DNA of 64,000 nt from IMG/VR virus record IMGVR_UViG_3300026097_000876, positions 186,001 to 250,000 of that record; one strand, given 5' to 3'. Numbering within the stretch: position 1 is the first letter of the stretch; each line of letters starts with the position of its first letter. Below the pieces are notes generated by a model, which searched no databases, was not told the origin of the DNA, and saw only the letters and a program-made list of their open reading frames with translations. Positions 33,053 through 59,713 of this stretch are shown here, piece by piece. The translations under genes were made by a program, and so were the position numbers.

Positions 33053-33400
33053 ATGGATGACGCTCTAGAAAAGGCACTTGAATTCTCAAATTTTACAGCA
33101 ACCTTAAATAATCAAAAAAGAATACTTCATGAAAAATATACTGAAGAGCTTGGACTTTACTATTGCGGCGGTAAGTTTACAGTAACAAAAGAATTATTAA
33201 CGTTTTGTCATTTGCTTTTAAGTAAAGACATTTCAAAAACTGTAGTAATAGACGATAATAATTCTCCTATCCAAATTGATGACATTGATGATTTTATGAC
33301 AGTGTCATTACAACAATACGCAACTGCCGCTAACAAATATTTTGCGCATTATAAAGAACTTAGTACTAAACGGAGTGTTGAAGGTTTAGCAGATGTCTGA
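33053..33400 (+). CDS. Hypothetical protein (possible fibre assembly chaperone)
   Basis: 115 aa ORF with strong RBS; directly after the fibre genes. Confidence 0.5.
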   Translation: MDDALEKALEFSNFTATLNNQKRILHEKYTEELGLYYCGGKFTVTKELLTFCHLLLSKDISKTVVIDDNNSPIQIDDIDDFMTVSLQQYATAANKYFAHYKELSTKRSVEGLADV

Positions 33401-34220
33401 CGGAGTATTATGTTTTGCTCATAATAATGGATCTATTGACTATATAAAGCAAGCGGCGTTCTTGGCAAAAAGAGTAAAACAACATTTAGACATACCAGTG
33501 TCTGTTGTTACATCAACACCTGACAAAATTAATAAAAAACACAGTAAACTATTTGATAATATTATTTTTATTGATGATGACAATACAAATTCTAAAAGAT
33601 ATAATGACGGACAGAACACACATCAAAATCTTTATTTTAAAAACAACGGAAGAATAAACAGTTACGACCTTACTCCGTATGATAGAACACTAGTTTTAGA
33701 TACAGATTACATTATTTGTAATGATGTTTTTAAAAATGCATTTGGAAATGGTAAATTTCAAATATATAGAGATGGGGTTGATTTATGTAGCTGGCGAAAA
33801 CATGCAGAGTTTGATTATATTAACAATAAAGGCATTCCTTTCTATTGGGCAACTTGTTTCTATTTTGAAAAAGATCTAGAAAATAAGATATTTTTTGATA
33901 CTCTAAAACAATTACAATCAAATTGGAGCTACTATAGCACAGTTTATGATTTAGGAAGTCGTAATTTTAGAAATGATCATATTTTTAGTATGGGTATTCA
34001 TATCATGAATGGATTTTCAGATAGCCACTGGGCTAAGTTATTACCGGGTAAAATGTTTTACACACTAGATAGAGATAAATTATACAAACTAGACAATGAT
34101 AAATTAGTTTTTATGTTAGAAAAAGAAAGTCGAGTTAATGAATATGTTCTGTCTTCGACAGATCGATGTAATGTACATGTAATGAATAAATTTAGCTTGG
34201 AGCGTGTTTTAGATGTCTAA
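33393..34220 (+). CDS. Glycosyltransferase, GT-A fold (GT8-like)
   Basis: YDLTPYDRTLVLDTD (DxD) motif; N-terminal DYIKQAAFLAK. Confidence 0.7.
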   Translation: MSDGVLCFAHNNGSIDYIKQAAFLAKRVKQHLDIPVSVVTSTPDKINKKHSKLFDNIIFIDDDNTNSKRYNDGQNTHQNLYFKNNGRINSYDLTPYDRTLVLDTDYIICNDVFKNAFGNGKFQIYRDGVDLCSWRKHAEFDYINNKGIPFYWATCFYFEKDLENKIFFDTLKQLQSNWSYYSTVYDLGSRNFRNDHIFSMGIHIMNGFSDSHWAKLLPGKMFYTLDRDKLYKLDNDKLVFMLEKESRVNEYVLSSTDRCNVHVMNKFSLERVLDV

Positions 34221-35022
34221 AGGATACGTAATGATGGCTTCGGGTGCCGAATACGTTAAACAAGCATATTTGTGTGCTAAAAGTATTAGAGAAACTCAAA
34301 CCATCAATAATGTGTCATTGCTTACTAATGACACAGTGCCGCAAGAATATAAATCAGTATTCGACAAAATAATTGAAGTCCCTAACAGTCAAACAGATTT
34401 TTATCGTACAGACTTTCGCTGGAAAGTATTTCATATTACTCCGTATGACGAAACAATTGTATTAGACACTGATATGATATTTCTTACTGATGTTAGTCAT
34501 TGGTGGAATTATCTCAGAAAATACGATATCTGTTTTACAAAAAACACAAGAACATATCGTAATACTCTGATAACAAACAATTATTATAGAAAGGCATTTG
34601 AAGATAATTATCTTCCTAATATTTATTGTGCATTTCATTATTTTAAAAAAACTGACATAGCTTTAAATTATTACTTAAAGTTAAAACAAATTTGTAAAAA
34701 CTATAAAGAATTTTATAAAATCTATGTTCCGAAACAAACACCTAAACTAAGTAGTATGGACATTAATCATGCCATTACAGTATTGGATCAACAAATAGAA
34801 AATTATATTTTTGAACCTGCTAGTTTTGTACACATGAAAAGCAATGTACAAGATTGGAAAAACCCAACAGAAAATTGGACAGATACTATTCCTTTTTATT
34901 TTTCACAAGATTTTACTCTTAAAGTTGGAAATTATTTACAACACGGAATCTTTCATTATACCGAAAACAGTTTTTGCAACACTATAATACAACAACTAGG
35001 AAAACAAAATGAAGTATATTGA
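34213..35022 (+). CDS. Glycosyltransferase, GT-A fold (GT8-like), paralogue
   Basis: FHITPYDETIVLDTD (DxD), FVHMK, FHY motifs. Confidence 0.7.
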   Translation: MSKGYVMMASGAEYVKQAYLCAKSIRETQTINNVSLLTNDTVPQEYKSVFDKIIEVPNSQTDFYRTDFRWKVFHITPYDETIVLDTDMIFLTDVSHWWNYLRKYDICFTKNTRTYRNTLITNNYYRKAFEDNYLPNIYCAFHYFKKTDIALNYYLKLKQICKNYKEFYKIYVPKQTPKLSSMDINHAITVLDQQIENYIFEPASFVHMKSNVQDWKNPTENWTDTIPFYFSQDFTLKVGNYLQHGIFHYTENSFCNTIIQQLGKQNEVY

Positions 35023-35527
35023 AGTACCTACTCCACAATATGTTTGTTATAATAAAAATACTGGAGAAATTTTTAGCATTGGACCTAGCATTGACGATGA
35101 ATATTCTTATATTGAAATTGCAGAAGAGCAATCTCAATTATTTAAAAATTTTACAGAAAGAATGGTTGAATGGAAAGTACTGTATAATAAAAGATCTAAA
35201 AAATTTGAACTTCGTAAAGATATAGAAAAAACAGAAAACGAATTTCCTCTTAAAAAAATTACAAAAGCAGTAGATGAATACGCCGATGTTGAATTAATAA
35301 TTGACAAACTAAAAAACTTGTGTTACATTAATATTAATGATCTTCCTGTTAACATAGACAAAGAAATAGAGTTTTTTATAACTAAAGAAAACGATCCACA
35401 TTTTTTGTATCAATCTTTAAAGTTTAATTTAGGAAGTGCTGATAAAATACATATTGAGATAGCACATACATACAGTGTATATTCTAATAATATGTTTGTA
35501 GAGTGTGCTGTAAAGGAGATAGTTTGA
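35009..35527 (+). CDS. Hypothetical protein
   Basis: 172 aa ORF translationally coupled to both neighbours. Confidence 0.6.
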   Translation: MKYIEVPTPQYVCYNKNTGEIFSIGPSIDDEYSYIEIAEEQSQLFKNFTERMVEWKVLYNKRSKKFELRKDIEKTENEFPLKKITKAVDEYADVELIIDKLKNLCYININDLPVNIDKEIEFFITKENDPHFLYQSLKFNLGSADKIHIEIAHTYSVYSNNMFVECAVKEIV

Positions 35528-36426
35528 AATTAAAAATTGCAGAACAAGACATTATCTATTTGTCGTACGACGAACCAAATGCAGAAAAAAATTATGCAGA
35601 CTTGTTATCTAAGGTTCCGTGGGCAAAACGAATTCACGGAGTCAAAGGTTCAGATGCGGCACATAAAGCCTGTGCAGAAATTAGCGAAACTGACAGATTT
35701 ATTACTGTAGACGGTGATAATATTGTTGATCAAAAATTTTTAGATCAAGTCATTGATTTAGATCAACATACTGATTTAAAGAAAAGTGTTATTAGCTGGT
35801 GCGGGCGTAATGTTATTAATGGACTTGTATACGGCAACGGTGGACTTAAATGTTGGCCTAAAGATTATGTTTTAAATATGCGTACACACGAAGCAGCAGA
35901 TCCTAACGATATTAATGCACAAGTTGAATTTTGTTGGGATGCAGAATACATTCAAATGTCTGACTGTTATAGCACAGTACACAACAATGCAAGTCCAAAA
36001 CAAGCGTGGCGAGCAGGTTTTCGTGAAGGTGTAAAACTTGCATTAGACCGAGGCGTAAAAGTAGACAAAGAATTATTTTTACAAAGCCATGAAAAAAATT
36101 TACATATGTTATATATTTGGCTTATGGTAGGATATGATGTTCCGAACGGGCATTTTTCAGTGTATGGTGCCAGAGAAGGACTTATGATGACTATGCTAAG
36201 TGATTGGGATTATGTTCAGGTCCGTGACTTTGATTATTTAGATAGTCATTGGGAGGGTATTAGTAGCATGCCTATGGATGTTCTTTATAGTGAAATTAAT
36301 AATAACGGATTTATGTTAAGAGATGAGTTAGGTATTCCGATTGCACCTGAACCATTATCAGAAGATCAGAGTGAATTTTTTAAAGCAGTTCACCACAGCT
36401 TCGGAAGAGGTAAACATCTTAAATGA
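35524..36426 (+). CDS. Glycosyltransferase-like protein (GT-A, DxD)
   Basis: Start reassigned to TTG 35524 after AAGGAG. Motifs LSYDEPNA, RIHGVKGSDAAH, FITVDGD, AWRAGFREGVKL. Confidence 0.65.
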   Translation: MKLKIAEQDIIYLSYDEPNAEKNYADLLSKVPWAKRIHGVKGSDAAHKACAEISETDRFITVDGDNIVDQKFLDQVIDLDQHTDLKKSVISWCGRNVINGLVYGNGGLKCWPKDYVLNMRTHEAADPNDINAQVEFCWDAEYIQMSDCYSTVHNNASPKQAWRAGFREGVKLALDRGVKVDKELFLQSHEKNLHMLYIWLMVGYDVPNGHFSVYGAREGLMMTMLSDWDYVQVRDFDYLDSHWEGISSMPMDVLYSEINNNGFMLRDELGIPIAPEPLSEDQSEFFKAVHHSFGRGKHLK

Positions 36427-37757
36427 ATAAAAATGAAGTAAAACAAAAATTAGATTCGGTTGGTTGCGGATTTTGTCTAGCTAAATGGACGCAAGTTACA
36501 ATTCATCTTGGATCCGGAATCAATCATAGTTGTCATCATGTCAGAGCACATGCAATTCCATTAAAAGATCTTGCTGACAATCCTAATGTTTTACACAACA
36601 CAGGATTCAAAAAGAATACCAGAAAGCAAATGCTAAACAACGAACGTCCTGATGAATGTGACTATTGTTGGAGAATCGAAGATAATACAGATAAACTTAG
36701 TGACAGAGTATTAAAAAGTGCAGATTCCTGGTCTTGGCCTGAATACGATATAATTAGTAAATCTTCAGGAGACGAGGATGTTTATCCTAAATATGTAGAA
36801 GTCAGTTTTAGTAATGTGTGTAATTTTAAATGTGGGTATTGCGGACCTGCATTTAGCAGCAAGTGGGCTGAAGAAATTAATCAACATGGTCCGTACACAT
36901 TTGATAAAACTAATTGGAAATATAATTTGATTGACGAATATCAACAACAAATTCCTACTAGAGAACATAATCCTTATATTGAAGCATTTTGGAAATGGTT
37001 TCCGGAAGCTGTTGAACACATGCATACCTTTCGAATTACAGGTGGAGAACCATTACTAAGTAAACATACTGACAAAGTTTTACAACATTTATTAGAAAAC
37101 CCCCAACCAGAATTAGAATTTAGTATTAATACTAATGCATGTCCCCCGAATAATTTGTGGAAAGAATTTACTAAAAAAATAAAAGTTTTAGAAGAAAAAA
37201 ACTGTATTAAAAGATTTGTATTATTTGTAAGTGCAGAAGCCAAAGGAAAACAACAAGAATATAACAGACACGGAATGAATTGGCAATTGTTTGTAGATAA
37301 TGTAGAATACTTTCTTGAAAATACTAATGGGCGGCTTAGTTTTATGAGTGCATTTAATATTTTAAGTGTACCAACATTTTTGCCTTTTTTAAAATATGTA
37401 TCTAGTCTCAAAGGAAGATTTGATAATGATGTAAATATTGATATTCCATATGTAAGAAATCCTCATTTTCTAGATTGTATGATTGCAACTGAAGAACTTG
37501 TACAAACATATTTACATCCTTGTCTTAAATTTATGCAAGAAAAAAACTTTGAAGCGTTTGAGATACAAAAATTTGAAAGAATTCTCGAAGATTTAGATGG
37601 TCGTTTTAAAAATCCAGATAAATTTAAACAAATATCAAATGAAGGACGAAGAATGTTTTACGACTGGATTAGAGAACACGATAAGCGTCGAGGAACAAAT
37701 TTTGAAAAAACTTTTCCAGAACTGATAACATTTTATAGAGATTGCTTGTATGTATGA
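36423..37757 (+). CDS. Radical SAM protein with N-terminal Twitch/SPASM-like domain
   Basis: CNFKCGYC motif and TGGEP; N-terminal CLAKW...SCHH...ECDYCW auxiliary cysteines. Confidence 0.85.
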   Translation: MNKNEVKQKLDSVGCGFCLAKWTQVTIHLGSGINHSCHHVRAHAIPLKDLADNPNVLHNTGFKKNTRKQMLNNERPDECDYCWRIEDNTDKLSDRVLKSADSWSWPEYDIISKSSGDEDVYPKYVEVSFSNVCNFKCGYCGPAFSSKWAEEINQHGPYTFDKTNWKYNLIDEYQQQIPTREHNPYIEAFWKWFPEAVEHMHTFRITGGEPLLSKHTDKVLQHLLENPQPELEFSINTNACPPNNLWKEFTKKIKVLEEKNCIKRFVLFVSAEAKGKQQEYNRHGMNWQLFVDNVEYFLENTNGRLSFMSAFNILSVPTFLPFLKYVSSLKGRFDNDVNIDIPYVRNPHFLDCMIATEELVQTYLHPCLKFMQEKNFEAFEIQKFERILEDLDGRFKNPDKFKQISNEGRRMFYDWIREHDKRRGTNFEKTFPELITFYRDCLYV

Positions 37758-38433
37758 TATTGTGTTTATAAGTTATCATGAATCTAATGCAGAACAAAAC
37801 TTTGATAAATTGCATCAAAGATTTAACAATATAGGCGTTTTTGGAGATAGAATAAAACGGGTATCTAATGTTAAGGGAATACATAATGCACATATCGAAG
37901 CTGCTAAGATAGTTAATACAAACTATTTTTATGTAGTCGATGGAGATGCTGATATTGTAAGTGACTTTAAATTTGATTATGAAACTATTGATAGTGATGT
38001 AGTACATGTATATTCCAGTATTAATCCTATTAATAATCTTGAATACGGCTACGGTGGAGTAAAATTACTACCAACACAACTTACTAAAAATATAGATACT
38101 ACTACACACGATATGACCACAAGTATATCAAAAAAATTTAAAGTTTTAGATGAAATATCAAATATTACAGCATTTAATACAGATGAATTTAGCACTTGGC
38201 GTTCGGCATTTAGAGAATGTGCAAAATTATCGAGTAGAACAATACAAGGACAAATCGATGAAGAAACCGAACAAAGACTCAAAATTTGGACAACCGTGGG
38301 ACACGATAGAGACTTCGGTGAACATGCCATTAACGGTGCTAGGGCCGGTATGGAGTTTGGCCTTTCTAACCAGTCTGATATATCATTAATAAACGATTTT
38401 GATTGGCTAAAAGAGCAATTCAATAATGATTAA
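37750..38433 (+). CDS. Glycosyltransferase-like protein, paralogue of 35524
   Basis: ISYHESNA, VKGIHNAH, VVDGDAD, YGYGGVKL, WRSAFRECAKL. Confidence 0.65.
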   Translation: MYDIVFISYHESNAEQNFDKLHQRFNNIGVFGDRIKRVSNVKGIHNAHIEAAKIVNTNYFYVVDGDADIVSDFKFDYETIDSDVVHVYSSINPINNLEYGYGGVKLLPTQLTKNIDTTTHDMTTSISKKFKVLDEISNITAFNTDEFSTWRSAFRECAKLSSRTIQGQIDEETEQRLKIWTTVGHDRDFGEHAINGARAGMEFGLSNQSDISLINDFDWLKEQFNND

Positions 38434-39277
38434 TATCGTTGTTACAAGTAAACCAGTAGATGGACTTCTTTATTATAGTTACGAATACTGTGATATGCTT
38501 AACAAAGCAGGCTATCCTGCTAAGGTTGTTATTATATGTCACCAAAAATTTAGTGTACTAGATTATATGGAAGTCCTAACCACCAAATACACATATGTAG
38601 ATAATGTTGTGTATAACAATTTAAATGTAGGCAATGACGATGTAACACTTGTTATGGGCAGGAGTATGATTACACTGTCTTGGATCAATTACAACGATTA
38701 TACAGAAGAACAAAAACAAACACTGCATAGTGTATTTGCTAATAAAGTAATAAGTGTGTATTCAGAAAATCATCCTGCACAATATCCGCAGGCAGTAGAG
38801 TTTTATAGCCCTAAACAAATTGTAGACCTATGCGACACTGAAGTGTATCCTAATGGCGTAGGAGAACACTTTGAAAAAACAATTAATTTTAGTATATATA
38901 AACCGCACACAGACAACATACAATTTAAACATTTATTTCTAGGAACAAACGACAAATACTACGCAACAGTAGAAAAGGTAATTGACCAATTTCCTGATCA
39001 CGGGATCTTGACATATGACGAAAAGTATGTTAATATTAAAAATAATAACGTATTTGCACCTGTAGGAAATCTAATGGGCATGTTCGAAACATATGTTTAC
39101 ACAAAAGAAACATTTGATCCGGCTCCTAGAATCTTTCAAGAGTGCAAATATTATGGAAAGGATGTGATTTACTTGAGAGACAAAAACATACAAGACGGCG
39201 GCAGTGTGTACTGGAAACGAGATCTAAAAGAACCAGATGTAACAGCAATCATAAATGCTATAAAGGAATTTAAATGA
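38426..39277 (+). CDS. Hypothetical protein (possibly GT-B-like)
   Basis: 283 aa; DPAPRIFQECKYYGK weakly resembles GT-B C-terminal motifs. Confidence 0.45.
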   Translation: MINIVVTSKPVDGLLYYSYEYCDMLNKAGYPAKVVIICHQKFSVLDYMEVLTTKYTYVDNVVYNNLNVGNDDVTLVMGRSMITLSWINYNDYTEEQKQTLHSVFANKVISVYSENHPAQYPQAVEFYSPKQIVDLCDTEVYPNGVGEHFEKTINFSIYKPHTDNIQFKHLFLGTNDKYYATVEKVIDQFPDHGILTYDEKYVNIKNNNVFAPVGNLMGMFETYVYTKETFDPAPRIFQECKYYGKDVIYLRDKNIQDGGSVYWKRDLKEPDVTAIINAIKEFK

Positions 39278-39633
39278 AAATTGATCCAAAATGTCTAAAA
39301 TTTAATACCCCAAAAAATAAAGGTGCGGCATATACTTCTGATGGATTTATGCTGCCCTGCTGTTGGATAGACGATCCGCCAGTTTATAGATATCTTGTAG
39401 AAATGGGTATGAAAGATCCGGAATTAGCATTAGAAAATAACGATTGCTTAGAAGACATTTTTACATCAGATCAATGGGAGAACTTCTTCCAAAAATTATA
39501 CGATGATCCTGATCGGTGTTCATATATGTGTAAGAAAAAATGCGGCGTTGAACTTACCGACGGCGAAACTGAAATTCGTAAAGTAGAAGAAAGACTAGAG
39601 GTTTTAAAACAAAGTGAAGGAAAGAATTACTGA
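39274..39633 (+). CDS. Stand-alone Twitch/SPASM-like Fe-S protein
   Basis: PKC...GFMLPCCW...CSYMCKKKC cysteine pattern; no radical SAM core. Confidence 0.65.
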   Translation: MKIDPKCLKFNTPKNKGAAYTSDGFMLPCCWIDDPPVYRYLVEMGMKDPELALENNDCLEDIFTSDQWENFFQKLYDDPDRCSYMCKKKCGVELTDGETEIRKVEERLEVLKQSEGKNY

Positions 39634-40357
39634 TACCTATGTAAAATATCAGAAAAATTGCAGGATTAATGTCGATACCTCGCATCGTTGTCCCTTTCGG
39701 TGCCCTCAGTGCGTGAGACAAAAGACAATAAGCCAAGATATGATACGTAGAAGTTTTGATTTGGAAGAACATAACTTTCAAAAAATATTAGATTATTACG
39801 ATAATGGTCCTACATTTTGTGGACAAATTTCTGACCCTATCTATCATCCTAGATTTTTAAATTTTTTAAAAATGTGCAATGGACGAAATAGAGCTGTTCG
39901 TATTGCCACAGTAGGTAGTGGTAAAAGCGACGAGTGGTGGGACGAGGCTTATAGCTATGGTCTTGGAGAAAATCAGTGGACTTTCGGAGTAGACGGTATA
40001 GACGAAAAGAGCGAACTGTATCGCGTTGGTAGTAATTTCAAAGATCAATGGCGTCGAATGCAACAGGGTAGAGATCTAGGACATGTAATTGTTTGGCAGT
40101 ATATTATATTTGGTTATAATGAACACGAAATAGATCAGGCAGTAGAAATTGCAAAGAAAGAAGATTTTACTCTGCTTTTTGTTAACACAAACAGGGGATT
40201 TAATCCAGAAAGTGATACCCTGAGAAAGAATGTTAATTTTAAAATAAACAGTCCCGATCCAAAGCATCTTACTGATCGTCTTAAGAAAGAATGGTATGCT
40301 CATACCACAGATGTATTTCAGGCCTGGCGTGATCTTCCTCCTTGGAGTCCGAAATGA
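39614..40357 (+). CDS. Radical SAM protein (core only)
   Basis: CPFRCPQC; FCGQISDPIYHP; FGVDG; WQYIIFGYNEH. Confidence 0.85.
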   Translation: MKERITDTYVKYQKNCRINVDTSHRCPFRCPQCVRQKTISQDMIRRSFDLEEHNFQKILDYYDNGPTFCGQISDPIYHPRFLNFLKMCNGRNRAVRIATVGSGKSDEWWDEAYSYGLGENQWTFGVDGIDEKSELYRVGSNFKDQWRRMQQGRDLGHVIVWQYIIFGYNEHEIDQAVEIAKKEDFTLLFVNTNRGFNPESDTLRKNVNFKINSPDPKHLTDRLKKEWYAHTTDVFQAWRDLPPWSPK

Positions 40358-53093: not shown

Positions 53094-53757
53094 TTACAAA
53101 ATCACTCCTAGGATTATCAAGAATTTCTGTAGGACTGCCTACTTGCTCTACTTTTCCTTGATTCATAATAACAATAGTGTCGCACATATTAAATGCTTCA
53201 GTGAAGTCGTGTGTGACGTACACTACTGTTGTATTTTTAAGTAGCTGTTTAATATCTTTTTGTAATTTAATTCTTAGCTTTAAGTCTAGCGATGCTAAAG
53301 GTTCGTCCATTAGTATAACATCTGGATTATATACTAATGCCCTTGCAATTGCAACTCGCTGTTGTTGCCCACCGCTTAATTGTTTAGGATATTTATCAGC
53401 ATGTTCTTCCATTCCTATAACATTTAAAATATTAGATACAGCGGATGTATTCTTGCCTTTTACTCTCAATGGATATGCTATATTTTCATAAGCAGTCATA
53501 TTAGGAAATAAACTAAAGTTTTGAAACACCATTCCTAGTGGTCTTTTATTACTACTTAGGCTAGTAATATCCAAACCGTTAACTATTACTTGTCCACAGT
53601 CTGGTGTTTCAAACCCTGTAATGCAATTAAGTAGGGTACTTTTGCCGCTGCCACTAGGTCCTAGAACAGCGACATTCGATCCAGAAGAAACATTAAAAGT
53701 TACATCATCGAGAACTTTATCTCGAAATGTTTTGCTAATGTTCTTTATTTCTAGCAT
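53014..53757 (-). CDS. potA: Polyamine ABC transporter ATPase (PotA-like, lacking C-terminal TOBE domain)
   Basis: Walker A GPSGSGKST, VFQNFSLFPNM, LSGGQQQRVAIARAL, DEP, YVTHD; only 247 aa. Confidence 0.9.
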   Translation of the reverse strand: MLEIKNISKTFRDKVLDDVTFNVSSGSNVAVLGPSGSGKSTLLNCITGFETPDCGQVIVNGLDITSLSSNKRPLGMVFQNFSLFPNMTAYENIAYPLRVKGKNTSAVSNILNVIGMEEHADKYPKQLSGGQQQRVAIARALVYNPDVILMDEPLASLDLKLRIKLQKDIKQLLKNTTVVYVTHDFTEAFNMCDTIVIMNQGKVEQVGSPTEILDNPRSDFVNEFVCETWKDYTASIFSSSVLSPSTR

Positions 53758-54842
53758 TAGTCTAAGAGCCAGGCTTCCCAGCGTTCATTGATGCGTTCGC
53801 CATTGTCAGCCCACCATGCGCCGTCACGTGGAATGCTACCAGTATAGTTATTAGGGTTAGTAACCATTTCGGCTTCCATGTCTGATCCAGTGTCTACCGA
53901 AGTCCAGTTGCCTGAATTTAAATCAATTGAACTCTTACGTGTAGGCGAGTAAGGAATAATACGACTAATTAGTGCTAGTGTTTCTGTACTAGTAGCATGT
54001 TGCAAAAACGCCTTTACTTCAGGAGTCATTTGTCCTTTTGCTACTACCCAAGGAGAAACTGTATAAATTTGTGCATCCCAAATTTGCTCAATGCTTTGTC
54101 CGTCTACGTTCTTGGCTTTCCAAAAACGTCCATTATAGCTTGCTAAAATTTGTACTTGTCCTGCACTCAATTGTTGAATACCAGCGGCTGCTTTGTCCCA
54201 CCATACAATATGATCTTTAATAGTATCTAACTTAGCAAATGCACGATCGAGTCCTTCGTCAGTTGCTAGTACATCACGTACAATGTTTCGATCCACTCCA
54301 TCGGCAATCAGTGCCCATTCTAAGTTATTGTAAGGACGGCGTTGTAATCCTCGCTTTCCTGGAAACTGTTCAACATCAAATACATCGTAAATTGTTTGTG
54401 GTGCGTTGTTAGCGTATGTTTCTGGATCGTATCCAAACTGAATACTGTATACTGCCTGTGGTGCCACACAATCTTTTAGCATACCAGGAAGAAAGTCCTC
54501 ACTAGGTAGTGTACCGTCTGGTGCAGGCAGCAACACATCGTCGTGATTAAAGTTTTCTACTAAACCGTCTTCGCATGCAATAGCAAGTGCTTCCTGAGGA
54601 ATATCAATTACATCATATGTAATGTTTCCTGTTTCAATTTGTGTACGCAATGCTGCTAGTGCAGAGTGTGCATTTTTGATAACGTTTACAGTTACATCTG
54701 GATTCTGCTCAATAAACGGATCAATTGCTGCTCTTTGTTGTGCTTCGCCCCATGCACCGCCATAATTTACAATATTTACAGTACTGTCAGCATATGCTGA
54801 ACTTGCAACAAGTGCTAGAACTGTCATAAAGGTATATTTCAT
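53757..54842 (-). CDS. potD: Polyamine ABC transporter substrate-binding protein (PotD/PotF family)
   Basis: Signal peptide (MKYTFMTVLALVASSAYA), YGGAW, FPGKRGL, LEWALIADGV, DRAFAKLDTIKDHIVWW, YNGR. Confidence 0.85.
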   Translation of the reverse strand: MKYTFMTVLALVASSAYADSTVNIVNYGGAWGEAQQRAAIDPFIEQNPDVTVNVIKNAHSALAALRTQIETGNITYDVIDIPQEALAIACEDGLVENFNHDDVLLPAPDGTLPSEDFLPGMLKDCVAPQAVYSIQFGYDPETYANNAPQTIYDVFDVEQFPGKRGLQRRPYNNLEWALIADGVDRNIVRDVLATDEGLDRAFAKLDTIKDHIVWWDKAAAGIQQLSAGQVQILASYNGRFWKAKNVDGQSIEQIWDAQIYTVSPWVVAKGQMTPEVKAFLQHATSTETLALISRIIPYSPTRKSSIDLNSGNWTSVDTGSDMEAEMVTNPNNYTGSIPRDGAWWADNGERINERWEAWLLD

Positions 54843-54916
54843 TTCATCTCCTGTAAGTCTTACTATAGTAATTATCTACGTATATAACTTAGATATTTAC
54901 TTCTGACATACTAATA

Positions 54917-54945
54917 ATAATACTACAATCAGCTCTAGTAGTCAA
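54917..54945 (-). promoter_or_regulatory. Sigma70-type promoter for the pot/B12-rSAM/ATP-grasp operon
   Basis: Minus strand TTGACT-17 bp-TATTAT; a GTAAATA late-like motif also lies at 54894-54900. Confidence 0.6.
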
Positions 54946-54973
54946 CTGTTTTATCGAGCATATATAATATACA

Positions 54974-55828
54974 ATGTCATATAAAGTAACACATAATCAC
55001 CATCTTAGCGTTCGCAAAACAACAGATTATATTGTAAAATTAGGTCGTTGTGAGAACATGCCTATGGATTTTAAATCTGAAGCATTACGAGCTGCTAAGT
55101 TAATAGCAAAAGAATCTAATAATATATGGATTAGTTACAGCGGCGGTATAGACAGTGAGTTTATTATTCAAGTGTTTCTTGAAGCAGGCATCCAATTTAG
55201 AGTTGCCACAATTGTTATGAAAGACGGATCTAACGATTACGATCTACAGCACAGTAGAAATTTTTGTAAACGTATGGGTATCAAGCTACACGAATTTGAA
55301 ATTGATTTAGAAGAGTTTTATAAAAATGATCTAGAAACATATGCTGTTGCAACTAATTGTATTAGTCCACAGTTTCCGGTGCATATGTGGTTATGGGATC
55401 AACTAGATGGATTTATAGTTGCAGGCCACGGTGATCCAATCTTTAAACGTAAAGATTCTAGATGGTATCTTCAAATTCAAAAAAAAGAAGACAGCGTATT
55501 TAGATATGCTCAGTGGAGAAATAGAAACATGGCTCCGGGATTTTACGTATATACTCCGGAACTTCTACTAAGTTTTATGCTAGAAAAAGAAGTAAGTAAT
55601 ATGTTTATTGCTCCTAAGTTAGCAGGGTTAAGAGATATTGCACAAGTCAAACATCTGGTTTATTCTAAATATTACGATATGGTCGAAAGAGAAAAAAGAA
55701 CTGGCTTTGAGTTAGTAGATAACTTAAACAATGAATATAAAATACATTTAGAAAATACAATACCCGGACATGGCGTATTTCTACAATCAGTAGAAGACCT
55801 ATTACATAGAATTTGGCCTAAACTATGA
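54974..55828 (+). CDS. PP-loop ATP pyrophosphatase (asparagine-synthetase-like synthetase domain, no glutaminase domain)
   Basis: ISYSGGIDSE PP-loop motif; 284 aa. Confidence 0.7.
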   Translation: MSYKVTHNHHLSVRKTTDYIVKLGRCENMPMDFKSEALRAAKLIAKESNNIWISYSGGIDSEFIIQVFLEAGIQFRVATIVMKDGSNDYDLQHSRNFCKRMGIKLHEFEIDLEEFYKNDLETYAVATNCISPQFPVHMWLWDQLDGFIVAGHGDPIFKRKDSRWYLQIQKKEDSVFRYAQWRNRNMAPGFYVYTPELLLSFMLEKEVSNMFIAPKLAGLRDIAQVKHLVYSKYYDMVEREKRTGFELVDNLNNEYKIHLENTIPGHGVFLQSVEDLLHRIWPKL

Positions 55829-56274
55829 TTATTAAACAAGTAGATTTTGAAACAGTGTTACCTGCGTGGGAAAACAATCTTTGGCCTAATCGCAAAGATC
55901 CTATTAAACCTACAAATAATATTTGTTATCTAGGTGGAAGAGATAAAGATATTAATAATCAAACACCTGTATTTTTTGCCGTGTACGATAATAAAACTAT
56001 AGTAGGTGTAAACAGCGGCTTTCCTACACTACACGGAGGATTTCGTAGTAGAGGTATTTGGGTTGATCCGGCATATAGAGAAAAAGGTGTTGGGGCAATG
56101 TTGCTAAATGCTGTAATTGATTATGCTCGAGAGAATGAATATTCTTATGCATGGAGTATGCCAAGACAAAGTGCTCTATCAGCATATACTAATGTAGGCT
56201 TTGAGCAAACAAGCGATTTTTTTGACGAAGGCGTAGAGTTTGGTCCTAACTGTTTTGTAAGGATTGATCTATGA
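55825..56274 (+). CDS. GNAT family N-acetyltransferase
   Basis: RGIWVDPAYREKGVGAMLL motif A; AYTNVGF. Confidence 0.88.
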   Translation: MIIKQVDFETVLPAWENNLWPNRKDPIKPTNNICYLGGRDKDINNQTPVFFAVYDNKTIVGVNSGFPTLHGGFRSRGIWVDPAYREKGVGAMLLNAVIDYARENEYSYAWSMPRQSALSAYTNVGFEQTSDFFDEGVEFGPNCFVRIDL

Positions 56275-57743
56275 CTGATGTAGTTTTAGTTACTTTACCT
56301 AAAATGGAAATTAGAGCACCCTTAATTGGCCCGGCTGCTCTTAAAAGTATATGCGAAGCAGATGGGTACTCTGTACATTGCGTTGACTTTAATATCGAAC
56401 TATATCATCAATTGCGAACACAAGTTCCTGAATGGTGGATTTATAATGATCAAACATTTATGCAAGACGATTTATTTGACGAAGCATGGACTACTATATT
56501 AGAACCTATAGTTCACAGCTGGTGTAAAAAACTACAAGACCTAAATCCTAAAGTAATTGGTGTTACAGTATTAAGCATGTGGACCGAACGTATCTGTAAT
56601 AAGTTTTTGCAAACACTAGAATTATATTGTCCAGATACCCGTGTAGTATTAGGGGGACCGGGAACACAGCCAGCATATGGTCCAAAGATGCTAGAAGCAA
56701 AAAAAATTGATGCATACATTACAGGCGAAGGCGAAGTTAGTTTTTTAGAATATCTTAGAGGCAACAAATATTATCCTGGAATAAATGGCAATCCTGCTGA
56801 ACAGATTGGAGATATGAATACATTACCGTTTCCTGACTATAGTGATTTTGATTTATCAAAATATAGCAGCACTTGGTGGGAACCTCACAAAGAGCCAACA
56901 GGGTGTAAATGGTTGTATATTACAGGCACTCGGGGGTGTATTAAGCGATGCACTTTTTGTAATGTAGGATCAATATGGCCAAAGTTTGTTAGCAAAACAG
57001 GTGAAACTATTGCTAAAGAAATAAAACATTATATGGATACTACAGGAGTAACTCACTATTATTTTACTGACAGTTTACTCAATGGTAATGTAAAGAATCT
57101 AGAAGAAATGGTAGACGCTATTATTTCTTTAGGTATTAAGCCTACTATAAAAGGACAATGGATTGCTCGTGGTAAAGATTTAATTAATAGTGAGCTATGG
57201 AAAAAGATGGGCAGAGCAGGTTTCAAACAACTCTTAGTGGGTATCGAAAGTGGAAGTTATAAAACACGCAACGAAATGAAAAAGGGTGTTAGAGAAGAAG
57301 ATATAGAATATACATTTGAACAAGCAAGCAAAAACAAAATTAGATGTATACCGTTGCTTATGGTAGGATATCCAACAGAGACAGCAGAAGATTTTGAGGA
57401 AAATATTAAATTTTGGACTAGGTATAAAAAATATAATGACAATGGTACTATTCTAAAACCTAGTGTGATGGCAACGAATATTTTACCAGACACTCCTCTA
57501 CATCATAAATTTACCGGAAACGGACTAGAGTATGACGATTTAGGTAACTGGGTATATAAAGACAACACTATGAAAGTTCGAATCGAACGCTGGTTTAGAT
57601 ATCGAGACGAGGCACATCGCTTAGGTTATGAACTTACTTTAGATACTCCTAAACATCTCATAAGAGAATACAAGCGTATTACTGGAATAGATCTTAGTGA
57701 AGAATACAAACTCAAAGATACAGAAGAAATATGGAATGATTGA
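56271..57743 (+). CDS. B12-binding-domain radical SAM protein, paralogue of 49921
   Basis: PLIGPAALK, GTRGCIKRCTFC, FTDSLLNGN, GIESGS, VGYPTET, KVRIERWFR shared with 49921. Confidence 0.9.
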   Translation: MTDVVLVTLPKMEIRAPLIGPAALKSICEADGYSVHCVDFNIELYHQLRTQVPEWWIYNDQTFMQDDLFDEAWTTILEPIVHSWCKKLQDLNPKVIGVTVLSMWTERICNKFLQTLELYCPDTRVVLGGPGTQPAYGPKMLEAKKIDAYITGEGEVSFLEYLRGNKYYPGINGNPAEQIGDMNTLPFPDYSDFDLSKYSSTWWEPHKEPTGCKWLYITGTRGCIKRCTFCNVGSIWPKFVSKTGETIAKEIKHYMDTTGVTHYYFTDSLLNGNVKNLEEMVDAIISLGIKPTIKGQWIARGKDLINSELWKKMGRAGFKQLLVGIESGSYKTRNEMKKGVREEDIEYTFEQASKNKIRCIPLLMVGYPTETAEDFEENIKFWTRYKKYNDNGTILKPSVMATNILPDTPLHHKFTGNGLEYDDLGNWVYKDNTMKVRIERWFRYRDEAHRLGYELTLDTPKHLIREYKRITGIDLSEEYKLKDTEEIWND

Positions 57744-57770
57744 TACATATTTAATAAAGGATTAAACAAT

Positions 57771-58373
57771 ATGATAAACACACTTTATAAAGTACCAATT
57801 TGGATACAAGACAATACATTGCCGCAAGATAAATTAGATATGCTAGAACAAGCATGCTACGACAAGTGTCAACCATTGTCAGATTATCCAGATGAATTTA
57901 ATCCTGATATTTTTAAATTTTCTCGTTCTAACAAAATAAATGTTCATACGGAGCCTGAATTTAAAGAAGTTACTAACTTAATGTTAACAGCCGCAAGAAA
58001 TATGATGTTAGAAATGAGTTACACACAAGAACAGGCTCAGCGTCTTAGAATTGTTAACAGCTGGTTTGCAATATATAAAAATAAAGATAATCTACCTATG
58101 CATACACACCGTGATAGTTTCTTTTCAGGAGCATATTATATTAAAGATGTTACAGATTGTAAATTACGATTTATTCATGACATCTATAGAAATACACCTT
58201 ACCCAGAAGATTTACATAATGAATGGGGCAAAAATGTTACAGACTTTGATTGTAAAGACGGACGAATTATTATATTTCCTAGTGACTGTATACACGGAAT
58301 TGATCAGCTTAATAGTAATAAGCCCGATAATGAACCTATTAAAGTTATGTTATCGTATAATTTTAATTTTTAA
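57771..58373 (+). CDS. 2OG-Fe(II) oxygenase-like protein (TIGR02466-like)
   Basis: NSWF...HTH...FSGAYY...GRIIIFPS..HG...LSYN pattern. Confidence 0.75.
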   Translation: MINTLYKVPIWIQDNTLPQDKLDMLEQACYDKCQPLSDYPDEFNPDIFKFSRSNKINVHTEPEFKEVTNLMLTAARNMMLEMSYTQEQAQRLRIVNSWFAIYKNKDNLPMHTHRDSFFSGAYYIKDVTDCKLRFIHDIYRNTPYPEDLHNEWGKNVTDFDCKDGRIIIFPSDCIHGIDQLNSNKPDNEPIKVMLSYNFNF

Positions 58374-58864
58374 ACACAGGCAACAATATGAATTCGATCC
58401 TCAAAACTTCCGTTTAATGCTAGGTGCTTTAATCTAGTATCTAACCAATATAAATGACCTACTGATTCCATTCTTAATATTTCTTCGTCTACTATAAACA
58501 TACAATTATTATTTGTAGTTACAGGAATATGCATTCGCGGGGTTGGATCTGTGTGATATGAATAACATTCTTTAGAGCGCAGTGTCATTACTCTAGTTCT
58601 ATATAAATTATTTTCTTTAATAATACTATTAATATATGGTATATCGTAGTAACATTCGGTAATATCTGTTTCTTCAAAATGTGTTTTAGCAGTTCTTTCT
58701 TTGTTTATAGGATCAAACACATCAAAATCACCTCTCCATGTTTGTAGATTATTGTTAGAATTTATAGCGTAGTTAATACTTTCTAATTCACTAATAATCT
58801 TTTCAACATCATATTTTTTGCCTGTTTTTATAAATTTATTCACGTACCTTTTCCCTTCGGACAT
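58370..58864 (-). CDS. Aspartyl/asparaginyl beta-hydroxylase-like 2OG-Fe(II) oxygenase
   Basis: RTRVM...YHTD...RMHIPV...HLALNGSFEDRIH (HxD...H triad). Confidence 0.7.
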   Translation of the reverse strand: MSEGKRYVNKFIKTGKKYDVEKIISELESINYAINSNNNLQTWRGDFDVFDPINKERTAKTHFEETDITECYYDIPYINSIIKENNLYRTRVMTLRSKECYSYHTDPTPRMHIPVTTNNNCMFIVDEEILRMESVGHLYWLDTRLKHLALNGSFEDRIHIVACV

Positions 58865-59292
58865 ACAGTTAATTCTTTTACTCTATACGGCTGGTCCAAT
58901 ACCCATTCAATTATACCTACTACATATTCTAAATCCATTTTAGGAGTGTCAATGTCTGCTACTCGTTCGGTATCAAAAAAACCAAAATTTAAACATGTAG
59001 TATCGTAATAATTATCAAAAAGTTGGCTGTTTGCATCACGCAGAGCTTTCTTTTCTACGCCATATCTATATGTTTTTTTTCCTGGATGATAAATCCAGTC
59101 ACTTGCTGAACTTCCTATATTAATTACTTTTTTGTTTTTTTCTATTGCTTTGTAGAGTAATTTTACTTGAGAAAATTCGTCATGCTTACAGTTAATAAAC
59201 ACATCGCATTCGTCTAACGATTCGCAATTGCCGTATTTTTCTTCAAGAACTTTTCCTAGACCTCGTCTTGTTCCTGTGATATAAAATTTCAT
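58840..59292 (-). CDS. Minimal short-chain dehydrogenase/reductase-like protein
   Basis: ITGTRRGLG Rossmann motif, INIGS, YGVEK (YxxxK); only 150 aa. Confidence 0.7.
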   Translation of the reverse strand: MKFYITGTRRGLGKVLEEKYGNCESLDECDVFINCKHDEFSQVKLLYKAIEKNKKVINIGSSASDWIYHPGKKTYRYGVEKKALRDANSQLFDNYYDTTCLNFGFFDTERVADIDTPKMDLEYVVGIIEWVLDQPYRVKELTVCPKGKGT

Positions 59293-59359
59293 TAGTAAGT
59301 TCCTTGGCTATAACACTATTATAAGTATATATACACTTATATTAGAAAGGACATATATT

Positions 59360-59713
59360 ATGGCATGGGGCTATCATTTATTAGTGGACTGTAAGCAAGG
59401 CGACATTCCTAGTATTACTAGCAAAGAAAATGTATCTACTTTTGTTAGGAAATTAGTAAAAGGAATTGACATGGTAGCATACGGTGATTTAATGATTGAA
59501 CGCTTTGCTACACATGATCCTGATAAAGCCGGTATTAGTTTTTGTCAAATGATTGAAACGTCAAACATTACAGGACATTTCGTCGAACTTAATGGAAACT
59601 TTTATATTGATGTTTTTAGTTGTAAACCTTATGATACTCATACAGTGCTGGATTTAATACAAGAATATTTTAATCCAGCATCTGTTAGCACAACTTTTAT
59701 TAATAGAGATTAA
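59360..59713 (+). CDS. speD: S-adenosylmethionine decarboxylase proenzyme-like (pyruvoyl-dependent)
   Basis: GYHLLVD, QMIETSNITGHF, YIDVFSCK motifs of class 1 AdoMetDC. Confidence 0.8.
   Translation: MAWGYHLLVDCKQGDIPSITSKENVSTFVRKLVKGIDMVAYGDLMIERFATHDPDKAGISFCQMIETSNITGHFVELNGNFYIDVFSCKPYDTHTVLDLIQEYFNPASVSTTFINRD

Follow-up and report, generated by a model that had tools for sequence, protein, structure and literature searches.

A candidate fibre-glycosylation gene set and an adjoining importer cassette in a jumbo phage

A giant phage carries, directly after its tail-fibre genes, a conserved set of glycosyltransferases and radical SAM enzymes that is best, although tentatively, explained as a system that decorates the fibre or baseplate proteins with an unusual sugar. 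Beside this set lies a separate, also conserved cassette that is inferred to import a polyamine-like compound and to modify it. These genes occupy positions 33053-59713 of a 64,000-nucleotide stretch of viral DNA (hereafter the window; positions 186,001 to 250,000 of IMG/VR record IMGVR_UViG_3300026097_000876), and are referred to here by their start positions in the window. A sequence-only reading had described the region as a single biosynthetic island of tailoring enzymes between fibre genes. The observation itself is confirmed, whereas the accompanying interpretation is only partly supported, since the region is not one pathway but a juxtaposition of three modules (M1, M2, and M3) with separate histories. 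No function has been shown experimentally.

Gene content of the region between the fibre genes

The open reading frames and their coordinates are as previously described, and the region encodes about 34 tightly packed enzymes of the classes that had been listed (Table 1). The analysis confirmed six radical SAM proteins (36423, 39614, 44075, 45799, 49921, and 56271), each with a CxxxCxxC motif, two free Cys-rich SPASM-like proteins that are paralogs of one another, and four nitroreductase-fold paralogs. A DegT aminotransferase (291 bits), a carbamoyltransferase with both domains above cut-off, an ATP-grasp protein, a GNAT, a 2OG oxygenase, an Asp/Arg hydroxylase, an AdoMetDC fold, and a full ABC importer were likewise confirmed. 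The PP-loop motif SGGxDS is invariant in five orthologs. The fibre genes that had been proposed to bracket the region on both sides were also confirmed. The clustering is not due to chance, as all six radical SAM matches in the 261.8-kb sister contig fall inside this 27 kb.

The four proteins that had been called glycosyltransferases have no Pfam or NCBIfam hit, but the assignment stands up to other evidence. Proteins 33393 and 34213 are paralogs that match a glycogenin/GT8 profile (E 2e-7), whereas 35503 and 37750 are paralogs with a GT-A fold (VIA-align Z about 10.6). An AF2 model (pLDDT 89) supports the GT-A fold, and its nearest structures include B4GALNT1 (Z 10.6), the viral glycosyltransferase A197, and the peptide and protein glycosyltransferases SunS, ThuS, and ppGalNAcT. 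Only three of the calls made from sequence alone are weak, namely the kinase, the methyltransferase, and the SDR.

Table 1. Genes of the region and its flanks, with coordinates in the window and supporting observations.
Position	Strand	Module	Feature	Observations
26637-28718	+	Fibre block	Fibre gene with a Collar domain	Paralogous to the next two; the block lies downstream of the gp5-like hub, gp25 wedge, and a 4986-aa protein; homologs precede M1 in 45-49 of 80 loci
28718-30550	+	Fibre block	Fibre gene	Paralog
30580-32070	+	Fibre block	Fibre gene	Paralog
32102-33016	+	Fibre block	Conserved 304-aa gene
33053-33400	+	M1	Small conserved 115-aa protein of unknown role	No conserved Cys, Ser, or Thr, so not a RiPP-type precursor; in 50 of 80 loci and in RsoM2USA
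33393-34220	+	M1	GT8/glycogenin-like glycosyltransferase	Conserved DTD motif
34213-35022	+	M1	GT8/glycogenin-like glycosyltransferase	Conserved DTD motif
35009-35527	+	M1	172-aa protein	No family match; in about a third of relatives
35503-36426	+	M1	GT-A fold (GT2-like) glycosyltransferase	DGD motif; helical C-terminal domain of its own
36423-37757	+	M1	N-terminal-twitch radical SAM enzyme	NF033640, 310 bits against a cut-off of 170
37750-38433	+	M1	Second GT-A paralog	hhalign probability 100% to 35503
38426-39277	+	M2 core	283-aa protein, probably GT-B/GT4-like transferase	Language-model lead only
39274-39633	+	M2 accessory	Cys-rich SPASM-like 119-aa protein	First split radical SAM pair, with 39614
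39614-40357	+	M2 accessory	247-aa radical SAM core	First split pair
40342-40923	+		Small kinase-like protein	Weak call, below cut-offs; in only 1-2 relatives, almost unique to this phage
40923-41996	+	M2 core	DegT/DnrJ/EryC1 PLP sugar aminotransferase
41993-44078	+	M2 accessory	Three tandem nitroreductase-fold paralogs (41993, 42709, 43398)
44075-44713	+	M2 accessory	Radical SAM core	Second split pair, with 44710; paralogous to the first pair, parts in the opposite order
44710-45045	+	M2 accessory	SPASM-like protein	Second split pair
45038-45736	+	M2 accessory	Fourth nitroreductase-fold paralog
45742-45770			Perfect sigma-70 consensus
45799-46635	+	M2 core	278-aa radical SAM enzyme with four C-terminal Cys	About 80-93% identity across more than 100 metagenomic clusters
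46632-48095	+	M2 core	NodU/CmcH-type carbamoyltransferase
48092-48697	+	M2 core	Putative SAM methyltransferase	Weak family call (Pfam E 0.005), strongly co-conserved
48684-49931	-	M3	ATP-grasp ligase
49921-51375	-	M3	B12-binding radical SAM enzyme
51368-52150	-	M3	Permease of Pot-type ABC importer
52107-53093	-	M3	Permease of Pot-type ABC importer
53014-53757	-	M3	ATPase of Pot-type ABC importer
53757-54842	-	M3	Periplasmic binding protein of the importer	Signal peptide
54974-55828	+	M3	Orphan PP-loop ATP pyrophosphatase	SGGIDS motif
55825-56274	+	M3	GNAT acetyltransferase
56271-57743	+	M3	Second B12 radical SAM enzyme	45% identical to 49921
57771-58373	+	M3	2OG-Fe(II) oxygenase
58370-58864	-	M3	Asp/Arg-hydroxylase-like protein
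58840-59292	-	M3	150-aa Rossmann-like fragment (the SDR call)	Gly-rich N-terminal motif only; no family hit
59360-59713	+	M3	Pyruvoyl AdoMetDC-fold decarboxylase	Ser/His/Cys spacing needed for self-processing kept; substrate uncertain (PMC10407285)
59710-60705	-	Downstream flank	Fibre-like protein	Mtd_N domain

Conservation of the three modules

Random, non-co-conserved combinations of these genes in relatives had been put forward in advance as an outcome that would speak against a shared function. Comparison of gene order across related viral loci instead revealed that the genes are co-conserved, although not as a single 27-kb unit. The order fibre genes, 33053, two GT8, GT-A, radical SAM, GT-A is kept in 45-68 of 80 related IMG/VR loci, down to about 25-50% identity. 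It is also kept in ORF354-348 of the Ralstonia jumbo phage RsoM2USA, beside the baseplate/tail ORFs of that phage. In the window, the hub, wedge, 4986-aa protein, and fibre genes lie directly upstream of M1 on the same strand, with overlapping stop and start codons.

M2 was examined independently by anchoring on the small radical SAM gene 45799. DegT, the carbamoyltransferase, and the methyltransferase are present alongside it in 29 of 29 loci of at least 18 kb, 38426 is present in 25 of 29, and the M1 GT-A genes lie within 10 kb in 24 of 29. This adjacency holds even where M2 is inverted relative to M1.

M3, in contrast, is absent within 10 kb of M2 in 68 of 68 relatives. All 13 of its genes have orthologs in one cassette, including the AdoMetDC gene, in another contig (L154), and 7-10 have orthologs in each of four more (L151, L152, L153, and L155). 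Two further contigs (L226 and L227) end at the PP-loop gene and show only part of the cassette. In the two contigs whose flanks were read, M3 lies next to ribonucleotide reductase, PAAR, NifU, and rubrerythrin genes rather than fibre genes.

Interpretation of the M1 and M2 genes

The sequence-only reading had inferred one multi-step pathway that makes an elaborate modified glycan or small molecule, most plausibly to decorate the virion. The multi-step character is supported and virion decoration is the best fit for the first half of the region, but a single pathway is not supported. We interpret M1 and M2 (33053-48697) as a soluble, cytoplasmic glycosylation system that lies on the same strand directly behind the baseplate/fibre genes, with no gap large enough for a separate promoter, and that is therefore probably co-transcribed with them. 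What the analysis shows is the presence of four GT-A-type transferases, probably a fifth of GT-B type, and an N-terminal-twitch radical SAM enzyme, and that this set travels with the fibre genes in the loci counted above; the remaining steps are inferences. In this view, the M2 core makes the unusual donor sugar or finishes the attached sugar, with 45799 oxidizing or otherwise activating a sugar position in the manner of twitch-type dehydrogenases such as BtrN and SpeY, DegT then installing an amine, and the carbamoyltransferase and methyltransferase capping it. The split radical SAM/SPASM pairs and nitroreductase-fold paralogs would be optional editors that differ between relatives and thereby diversify the glycan. 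The acceptor would be a fibre or baseplate protein, such that the glycan would change adsorption, stability, or recognition of the virion.

This reading, together with that of M3 below, is held with less than even confidence. No glycan, acceptor, or product has been observed, and the target is inferred from gene linkage only. The cluster contains no sugar nucleotidyltransferase or 4,6-dehydratase, and the only such genes found lie about 95 kb upstream in the 261.8-kb sister contig. The role proposed for 45799 rests on a low-confidence model (pLDDT 63) and on non-significant matches to EpeE (E 4e-3), SpeY (2.6e-2), and BtrN (0.06). The BtrN/BtrS and SpeY aminoglycoside pathways nevertheless offer a parallel, in that a small radical SAM enzyme with an auxiliary Cys cluster lies next to a DegT aminotransferase, and carbamoyl- and methyltransferases are also present, with SpeY and BtrN among the nearest structures and sequences; membership is not established, and there is no cyclitol synthase here.

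Of the alternative targets that had been suggested, the host surface is disfavored. GT8 and GT2 families and DegT, carbamoyl, and methyl tailoring are typical of O-antigen clusters, and marine phages carry LPS-type genes, which could allow remodelling of host LPS or capsule to give superinfection exclusion or release from cell debris. However, no transmembrane segment occurs in any M1 or M2 protein, and there is no priming transferase, flippase, polymerase, or ligase, while the conserved neighbors are fibre genes, including in a soil Ralstonia phage. We consider this explanation very unlikely.

Hypermodification of phage DNA with a sugar or polyamine-containing group to evade restriction is also considered unlikely. 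Phages glycosylate DNA and attach putrescine or amino acids to thymidine (Pyle et al. 2024 as cited in PMC12619734), and M3 combines amine import, a GNAT, and a PP-loop enzyme of which a few relatives match the QueC family. Yet the 261.8-kb sister contig (73% complete) has no thymidylate-synthase-like (ThyA-like) hydroxymethylase, no TET/JBP, and no TGT/DpdA gene, the island has no 5-hydroxymethyl-dU kinase-like gene beyond the weak, non-conserved kinase, and M1 is embedded in the late structural operon rather than among replication genes.

A third possibility is maturation of the RiPP type, in which the radical SAM/SPASM, B12 radical SAM, ATP-grasp, hydroxylase, GNAT, and flavoprotein enzymes modify residues of a fibre protein or small peptide to which the glycosyltransferases add sugars, as in glycocins. 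Radical SAM/SPASM, B12 radical SAM, ATP-grasp, and hydroxylase enzymes are equally typical of such maturation, the B12 radical SAM enzymes score best or near-best against RiPP C-methyltransferase models, the nearest structures to 45799 include the peptide epimerase EpeE, and SunS and ThuS are among the nearest to the GT-A protein. In one Bacteriovorax locus, moreover, the radical SAM family of 36423 lies beside an M16 peptidase and a radical SAM/SPASM enzyme. Nevertheless, all family scores are far below the RiPP equivalog cut-offs, no precursor-like small ORF lies in the gaps of the island, and 33053, the only small conserved protein, does not have the residues of a precursor (Table 1). DegT and the NodU-type carbamoyltransferase are sugar or small-molecule enzymes, and an importer that depends on a binding protein has no place in a RiPP pathway. 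This explanation is regarded as unlikely, although it is the least so of the alternatives.

The enzyme repertoire also mirrors aminoglycoside clusters, with a DegT-type aminotransferase, a twitch-type radical SAM enzyme, a carbamoyltransferase, B12 radical SAM methyltransferases, a GT4-like transferase, ATP-grasp, GNAT, a small kinase-like protein, and a 2OG oxygenase. Butirosin, tobramycin, gentamicin, and kanamycin biosynthesis use these classes. The product could then be a diffusible aminoglycoside- or nucleoside-like pseudosaccharide used during infection, for example against competing phages or bacteria. This is considered unlikely, since none of the 34 island proteins matched a cyclitol-forming enzyme (2-deoxy-scyllo-inosose synthase or dehydroquinate-synthase family) in Pfam scans, there is no exporter, and the half of the list that completes the resemblance lies in the separately inherited M3. 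Strict linkage of M1 to fibre genes over great evolutionary distance is likewise not expected for a diffusible product.

Among described systems, the virion glycosylation cassettes of mycobacteriophages (Freeman et al. 2023, as cited in PMC12619734) similarly place phage-encoded glycosyltransferases with methyltransferase-type tailoring beside structural genes, and act in the cytoplasm on virion proteins. Here, however, the neighbors are baseplate and fibre genes rather than capsid and tail-tube genes, and the set includes an obligatory radical SAM enzyme, an aminotransferase, a carbamoyltransferase, and up to five further radical SAM and flavoprotein editors. Giant viruses that synthesize chlorovirus capsid glycans (as cited in PMC5852040), or Mimivirus fibril glycans with a viosamine/bacillosamine pathway, encode both sugar-tailoring enzymes (DegT-type aminotransferase, methyl- and acetyltransferases) and GT-A-type transferases to coat their own surface fibres, in clusters that vary between clades. 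Those are eukaryotic viruses that use NAD-dependent dehydratases, which are absent from the cluster here, where radical SAM enzymes and a carbamoyltransferase are present instead. Protein 36423 is a full member of the NF033640 family, for which we found no known function. Our analysis adds that this family is linked to glycosyltransferases in jumbo phages and in Bdellovibrionota, where it sits next to GT1 and GT2 genes on the chromosomes, often in tandem arrays.

The importer cassette

M3 (48684-59713) is interpreted as an independent cassette whose adjacency to M1 and M2 is peculiar to this phage. The data show that a binding-protein-dependent importer of the spermidine/putrescine/GABA/opine family is co-inherited with a PP-loop enzyme, GNAT, ATP-grasp, B12 radical SAM enzymes, oxygenases, and an AdoMetDC-fold decarboxylase. 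From this we infer that the cassette takes up a polyamine-like amine during infection and converts it into a modified amine or amine conjugate by ligation, acetylation, C-methylation, and hydroxylation. The best solved relative of the binding protein is a spermidine/putrescine-binding protein (E 5e-53), followed by GABA and opine binders, and the permeases score best against PotB and PotC. The ATPase, however, scores slightly higher against a 2-aminoethylphosphonate transporter model than against PotA, and no transporter or AdoMetDC equivalog cut-off is reached. A PP-loop-GNAT fusion protein exists.

The binding protein, two permeases, and ATPase resemble the PotABCD/PotFGHI polyamine importers, and an AdoMetDC-fold pyruvoyl decarboxylase and a GNAT are present, as in phage polyamine metabolism (PMC9992855, PMC10407285). 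The survey of viral polyamine genes mentions no transporter, whereas here the importer is fixed in one cassette with PP-loop, ATP-grasp, B12 radical SAM, and oxygenase genes, which points to derivatization of the imported compound rather than plain supply.

Genomic setting and family assignments of the island genes

The window corresponds to bases 2070-66069 of a 71,988-bp IMG/VR viral contig, and a near-identical sister contig of 261,806 bp, rated as 73% complete by CheckV, covers the whole region. An identical protein was also identified on a 331,644-bp contig. The phage genome is therefore roughly 350 kb, that of a jumbo phage. G+C content stays at 0.30-0.39 across the window, with no compositional break at the island. 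Upstream on the + strand lie, in order, genes for a gp5-like hub, a gp25 wedge protein, a single very large ORF, and three paralogous fibers, and the island begins 36 nt after the last gene of this structural operon. The very large ORF, which lies between the baseplate wedge genes and the fiber genes, is uninterrupted, has FG-GAP and weak CBM_5_12 matches, and presumably encodes a giant baseplate or fiber protein. In what follows, island genes are named by their start positions in the window.

Positions of features in the window and in related contigs
Feature	Sequence	Coordinates	Strand
gp5-like hub with a lysozyme domain	window	4475-6970	+
gp25 wedge protein	window	7014-7445	+
Single ORF of 4986 aa	window	11045-26005	+
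Three paralogous fiber genes sharing an N-terminal domain	window		+
Segment associated with the single public sequencing run	window	31500-37500	
Perfect sigma-70 consensus (TTGACA, 17 nt, TATAAT)	window	45742-45770	+
M3 cassette (13 genes)	window	48684-59713	
Fiber-like protein with an Mtd_N (major tropism determinant) N-terminal domain	window	59710-60705	-
DUF2201 metallopeptidase plus VWA-like domain protein	window	62257-63573	-
HldE-like sugar kinase/nucleotidyltransferase fusion, SDR epimerase/dehydratase, and cupin	sister contig	125037-128657	
NifU-like, rubrerythrin, and rubredoxin genes preceding M3	contigs L152; L155	8689-9860; 831-2150	

The sequence-only reading had described the island as a dense block of glycosyltransferases, radical SAM enzymes, and other tailoring enzymes, and had named family-level annotation of each gene as a way to check this. 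Scans with Pfam, NCBIfam, and PHROG models bear out most of that list, and the observation of a dense enzyme block is confirmed. All six radical SAM matches in the 261.8-kb sister contig fall inside these 27 kb, indicating that the clustering is real. Each of the six radical SAM proteins has a CxxxCxxC motif. The Pfam Radical_SAM model is above its cut-off (29.5) for 36423, 45799, 49921, and 56271, but below it for 39614 (27.3) and 44075 (19.4). The N-terminal-twitch enzyme 36423 is a full member of family NF033640, scoring 310 bits against a cut-off of 170 and covering model positions 4-397 of 398. Two of the six combine an N-terminal B12-binding domain with a radical SAM core; 49921 scores 32.9 against a cut-off of 32.1, whereas 56271 scores 30.8, just under the cut-off, but is a 45% identical paralog of 49921. 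No equivalog model (PhpK, RiPP C-MT, HpnJ, and others) reached its cut-off for these proteins. The two free Cys-rich SPASM-like proteins each belong to a split radical SAM pair, and the two pairs are paralogous.

The four nitroreductase-fold proteins are paralogs. The DegT/DnrJ/EryC1 aminotransferase scores 291 bits against a cut-off of 19.8, but the PseC, LegC, ArnB, and DesI equivalogs are all below their cut-offs, and thus its substrate was not identified. The NodU/CmcH carbamoyltransferase has both the Carbam_trans_N and Carbam_trans_C domains (73 and 225 bits, both above cut-off), although the NodU equivalog is far from reached (139 against 1000). An ATP-grasp protein, a GNAT, two oxygenases, an AdoMetDC-fold protein, and a complete binding-protein-dependent ABC importer were also confirmed. 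In contrast, three assignments are weak. The kinase 40342 is below cut-offs and nearly unique to this phage, the methyltransferase 48092 is weak by family but strongly conserved, and the proposed SDR 58840 has no family hit.

The four proposed glycosyltransferases have no Pfam or NCBIfam hit at E 0.01, but they hold up under more sensitive tests. A profile of 34213 orthologs searched against PDB sequences matches glycogenin at E 2e-7. The 33393 profile reaches only E 0.03, but 33393 is a paralog of 34213 (hhalign 99.7%). The DxD metal/nucleotide-sugar motif is conserved in this pair: DTD at 103-105 is invariant in 23 sequences, and DTD at 85-87 is at least 90% conserved in 25 sequences. Because neither protein reaches the gathering score of the Pfam Glyco_transf_8 model, we refer to them as GT8-like and not as GT8 members. 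The other two, 35503 and 37750, are paralogs of one another (hhalign 100%). A confident AF2 model of 35503 (pLDDT 89) has a GT-A N-terminal domain, with VIA-align Z of 10.6 to 9.4 over residues 9-161 against B4GALNT1, a Leptospira GT, the archaeal-virus GT A197 of STIV, and the peptide S-glycosyltransferases SunS/ThuS. GT2-annotated AFDB clusters match at E 8e-7, and a DGD motif is conserved. Membership in Pfam Glycos_transf_2 is not supported by sequence, and since the fold class also includes sugar nucleotidyltransferases (HddC and IspD appear at Z 7.6-9.1), transferase chemistry is inferred for this pair. A fifth protein, 38426, is a possible GT-B/GT4-like transferase, although this rests on a language-model lead only. 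Profile searches of the twitch radical SAM enzyme, the GT-A pair, and the PP-loop protein against PDB sequences returned nothing significant.

Distribution of the M1 and M2 modules

Random, non-co-conserved combinations of the genes in relatives had been put forward in advance as part of what would refute the pathway reading, and gene order was compared across related loci. The genes are co-conserved and biosynthetic. However, their distribution led us to reject a single 27-kb pathway: the sequence-only interpretation of one multi-step pathway is only partly supported, since the genes form three modules, denoted M1 (linked to the fiber genes), M2 (a tailoring cassette that follows M1), and M3 (an importer cassette).

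Megablast of the island against 50,697 phage records found nothing. The twitch radical SAM enzyme 36423 of M1, however, has 334 relatives in IMG/VR. In the 80 loci that were fetched, homologs of 35503 and 37750 were present in 68 loci each, those of 33393 and 34213 in 55 each, that of the small conserved protein 33053 in 50, and those of the fiber genes in 45-49, and the order is always the same. A tblastn search with three M1 proteins identified only one cultured phage with the module, the Ralstonia jumbo phage RsoM2USA, such that XacN1 and other cultured jumbo phages lack the module at this sensitivity. In RsoM2USA, ORF354-348 reproduce the order gene for gene at 33-50% identity. All are annotated as hypothetical, and they lie directly beside the ORFs that its authors assign to baseplate, tail, and structural proteins. 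These observations indicate that M1 has stayed attached to the fiber/baseplate operon across very distant jumbo phages.

To examine M2 we used the small radical SAM enzyme 45799 as an independent anchor. This enzyme is unusually conserved, at about 80-93% identity across more than 100 metagenomic clusters, some of which are on contigs of over 300 kb. Among 29 loci of at least 18 kb anchored on 45799, DegT, the carbamoyltransferase, and the methyltransferase have homologs in 29, 38426 in 25, and the M1 GT-A genes (within 10 kb) in 24. Adjacency to M1 holds whether M2 points the same way as M1 or is inverted. In contrast, the split radical SAM/SPASM pairs and the nitroreductase-fold paralogs occur in only some loci, and the pattern is thus one of a fixed core with a variable set of editors.

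More distant relatives carry tandem arrays of up to five twitch radical SAM paralogs in the same position. Arrays of up to five or more diverged paralogs of this family were identified both in phage-like contigs and in Bdellovibrionota contigs (loci L114, L115, L117, L119, L133, L139, and L145). Promoter and terminator scans were at chance level overall, apart from one perfect sigma-70 consensus that sits in the only + strand gap of over 60 nt in M1/M2, directly upstream of 45799. Only one DNA run, and no RNA run, holds the sequence, and co-transcription was therefore not examined. Beyond the island, no template/variable repeat pair was found within 56-64 kb, and there is thus no sign of a diversity-generating retroelement near the fiber-like gene with the Mtd_N domain. 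The DUF2201/VWA-like protein that lies just beyond the island also occurs in the phage-like locus L086.

A separate importer cassette, M3

Single-protein scans of IMG/VR with the B12 radical SAM enzymes and the binding protein returned only the sister contig. Homologs of the binding protein at 52-64% identity in the protein database led, through inspection of their contigs, to other metagenomic sequences. In one of these contigs (L154), all 13 M3 genes have orthologs in one cassette, including the AdoMetDC-fold gene at 68% identity. Four further contigs (L151, L152, L153, and L155) share 7-10 of them, and two IMG/VR contigs that end at the PP-loop gene show part of the cassette. The neighbors in L152 are ribonucleotide reductase, PAAR, NifU, and rubrerythrin genes, and those in L155 are NifU, rubrerythrin, and rubredoxin genes; none of them are fiber genes. 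The NifU-like, rubrerythrin, and rubredoxin genes that precede the cassette may provide iron-sulfur assembly and oxygen protection for the many radical SAM enzymes. None of 68 M2-anchored relatives has the importer, ATP-grasp, PP-loop, GNAT, or AdoMetDC genes within 10 kb. M3 is therefore coherent, but its adjacency to M1/M2 is peculiar to this phage.

The M3 importer comprises, in one operon, a binding protein with a cleavable signal peptide and no lipobox, two BPD_transp_1 permeases, and an ABC ATPase, as in a Pot-type importer. The best solved relative of the binding protein is a spermidine/putrescine-binding protein (E 5e-53), followed by GABA and opine binders, and the permeases score best as PotB and PotC. 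However, the ATPase scores marginally better as a 2-aminoethylphosphonate transporter (PhnT2, 282 bits) than as PotA (256 bits), no equivalog cut-off is reached, and whether a polyamine is the substrate was not assayed. The AdoMetDC-fold protein scores 59.5 bits against a Pfam cut-off of 25 and retains the residues needed for self-processing, with Ser, His (+5), and Cys (+20) at the same spacing as S63/H68/C83 of the T. maritima class 1b enzyme SpeD (PMC10407285). It scores below the equivalog cut-off (32 against 76 bits) and therefore may be an ornithine or arginine decarboxylase. Phage homologs are known to have become such decarboxylases (PMC10407285). The PP-loop protein belongs to an orphan family with 113 metagenomic hits, none of which is named and a few of which match QueC. 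One relative (P0294, 474 aa) is fused to a GNAT domain, which suggests that the two enzymes act on the same substrate.

Possible targets of M1 and M2 and comparison with known systems

Several targets were considered for the M1 and M2 enzymes. A hydropathy scan found multi-span proteins only in the two ABC permeases, and no M1 or M2 protein has a transmembrane segment. The membrane priming transferase, flippase, and polymerase of an undecaprenyl-phosphate-dependent surface polysaccharide cluster were therefore not identified, and such a pathway is unlikely. No ThyA-like hydroxymethylase, TET/JBP, or TGT/DpdA gene was found in the 261.8-kb contig, which argues against DNA base modification. However, this contig is incomplete, and the TET/JBP test is weak, as its control found the family in none of the control genomes. 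A RiPP cluster would be expected to include a precursor peptide gene co-conserved with the maturases, but no small ORF lies in the gaps of the island and 33053 lacks conserved modifiable residues, although a structural protein as substrate is not excluded. In Bdellovibrionota chromosomes, where most of the bacterial homologs of the twitch radical SAM enzyme that we found lie, this enzyme also sits beside GT1 and GT2 genes, which ties the family to glycan chemistry independently of phages. Together with the position in the structural operon, these observations favor cytoplasmic glycosylation of fiber or baseplate proteins.

The presence of glycosyltransferases encoded beside, and conserved with, structural genes is consistent with a phage virion glycosylation system. 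While this linkage was demonstrated by our comparisons, the protein target is inferred from it, as is the proposed order of chemistry, namely radical SAM activation, DegT amination, carbamoylation, and then methylation; no function has been shown experimentally. Attachment of a glycan to virion proteins was not measured here, and proteomics of RsoM2USA identified only abundant bands and did not look for glycans. The comparison of 45799 with twitch dehydrogenases such as SpeY and BtrN rests on non-significant scores and on a poor AF2 model (pLDDT 63), owing to an alignment that is too shallow, and the idea that it is such a dehydrogenase was thus not tested. Nucleotide-sugar genes are not in the cluster. 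However, about 95 kb upstream of the island in the sister contig, the same phage encodes an HldE-like kinase/nucleotidyltransferase fusion, an SDR epimerase/dehydratase, and a cupin, which may supply a nucleotide-activated heptose or hexose.

The nearest known systems are the virion glycosylation cassettes of mycobacteriophages and the glycosylation machinery of chloroviruses and Mimivirus (cited in part in PMC12619734 and PMC5852040), the radical SAM/aminotransferase logic of aminoglycoside pathways, and Pot importers together with viral polyamine enzymes, a survey of which mentions no transporter (PMC9992855). Our literature searches found no description of this module. A 2025 paper on aquatic ‘moraphages’ reports four core glycosyltransferase orthogroups in aquatic jumbo phages, which may be the same genes, although we did not confirm this correspondence. 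Relative to virus-encoded glycosylation as already known, what is new here is a fiber-linked system rich in radical SAM enzymes, whereas the importer cassette is an uncharacterized second system.

Virion glycosylation in phages has so far been shown only for a few mycobacteriophages. The module would extend it to the receptor-binding fibers of jumbo phages, and it is abundant, as the number of relatives of 36423 in IMG/VR shows. It would also give a first functional context, glycan chemistry, to the uncharacterized NF033640 family and would point to sugar modifications made by radical SAM enzymes rather than by the usual NAD-dependent dehydratases. The existence of one cultured carrier, RsoM2USA, makes the main claim directly testable. 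The importer cassette would be a rare case of a phage bringing a complete binding-protein-dependent uptake system fused to a biosynthetic pathway, which would widen the concept of auxiliary metabolic genes and of viral polyamine metabolism.

A more far-reaching possibility, which our data do not exclude but which we consider less likely than not, is that a widespread lineage of jumbo phages, from the ocean to a soil Ralstonia phage, carries a dedicated fiber-glycosylation system driven by radical SAM enzymes. In this view, the tailoring genes would be swapped between relatives much as O-antigen genes are, giving the receptor-binding fibers a variable coat of carbamoylated and methylated amino sugar, and the same radical SAM family would do related glycan chemistry in predatory Bdellovibrionota. 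Separately, some of these phages would install their own periplasmic-binding-protein importer in the host, to capture an amine and convert it with B12 radical SAM, ATP-grasp, and PP-loop enzymes into a new metabolite needed for infection.

The only public run holding the sequence is labeled ‘soil metagenome,’ whereas the relatives found through IMG/VR and the protein database include many carrying Tara source labels, and the habitat of this particular phage is therefore uncertain. Full M1-plus-fiber arrangements were also identified in ‘bacterial’ MAGs (loci L086, L109, L115, L119, and L139), and these look like phage contigs swept into bins. Several phage-like contigs carrying M1 (loci L084, L091, L115, L119, and L141) were binned into Bacteroidota MAGs (Crocinitomicaceae, Flavobacteriaceae, Haliscomenobacter, and Saprospiraceae), which is a weak hint at the hosts of part of this lineage.
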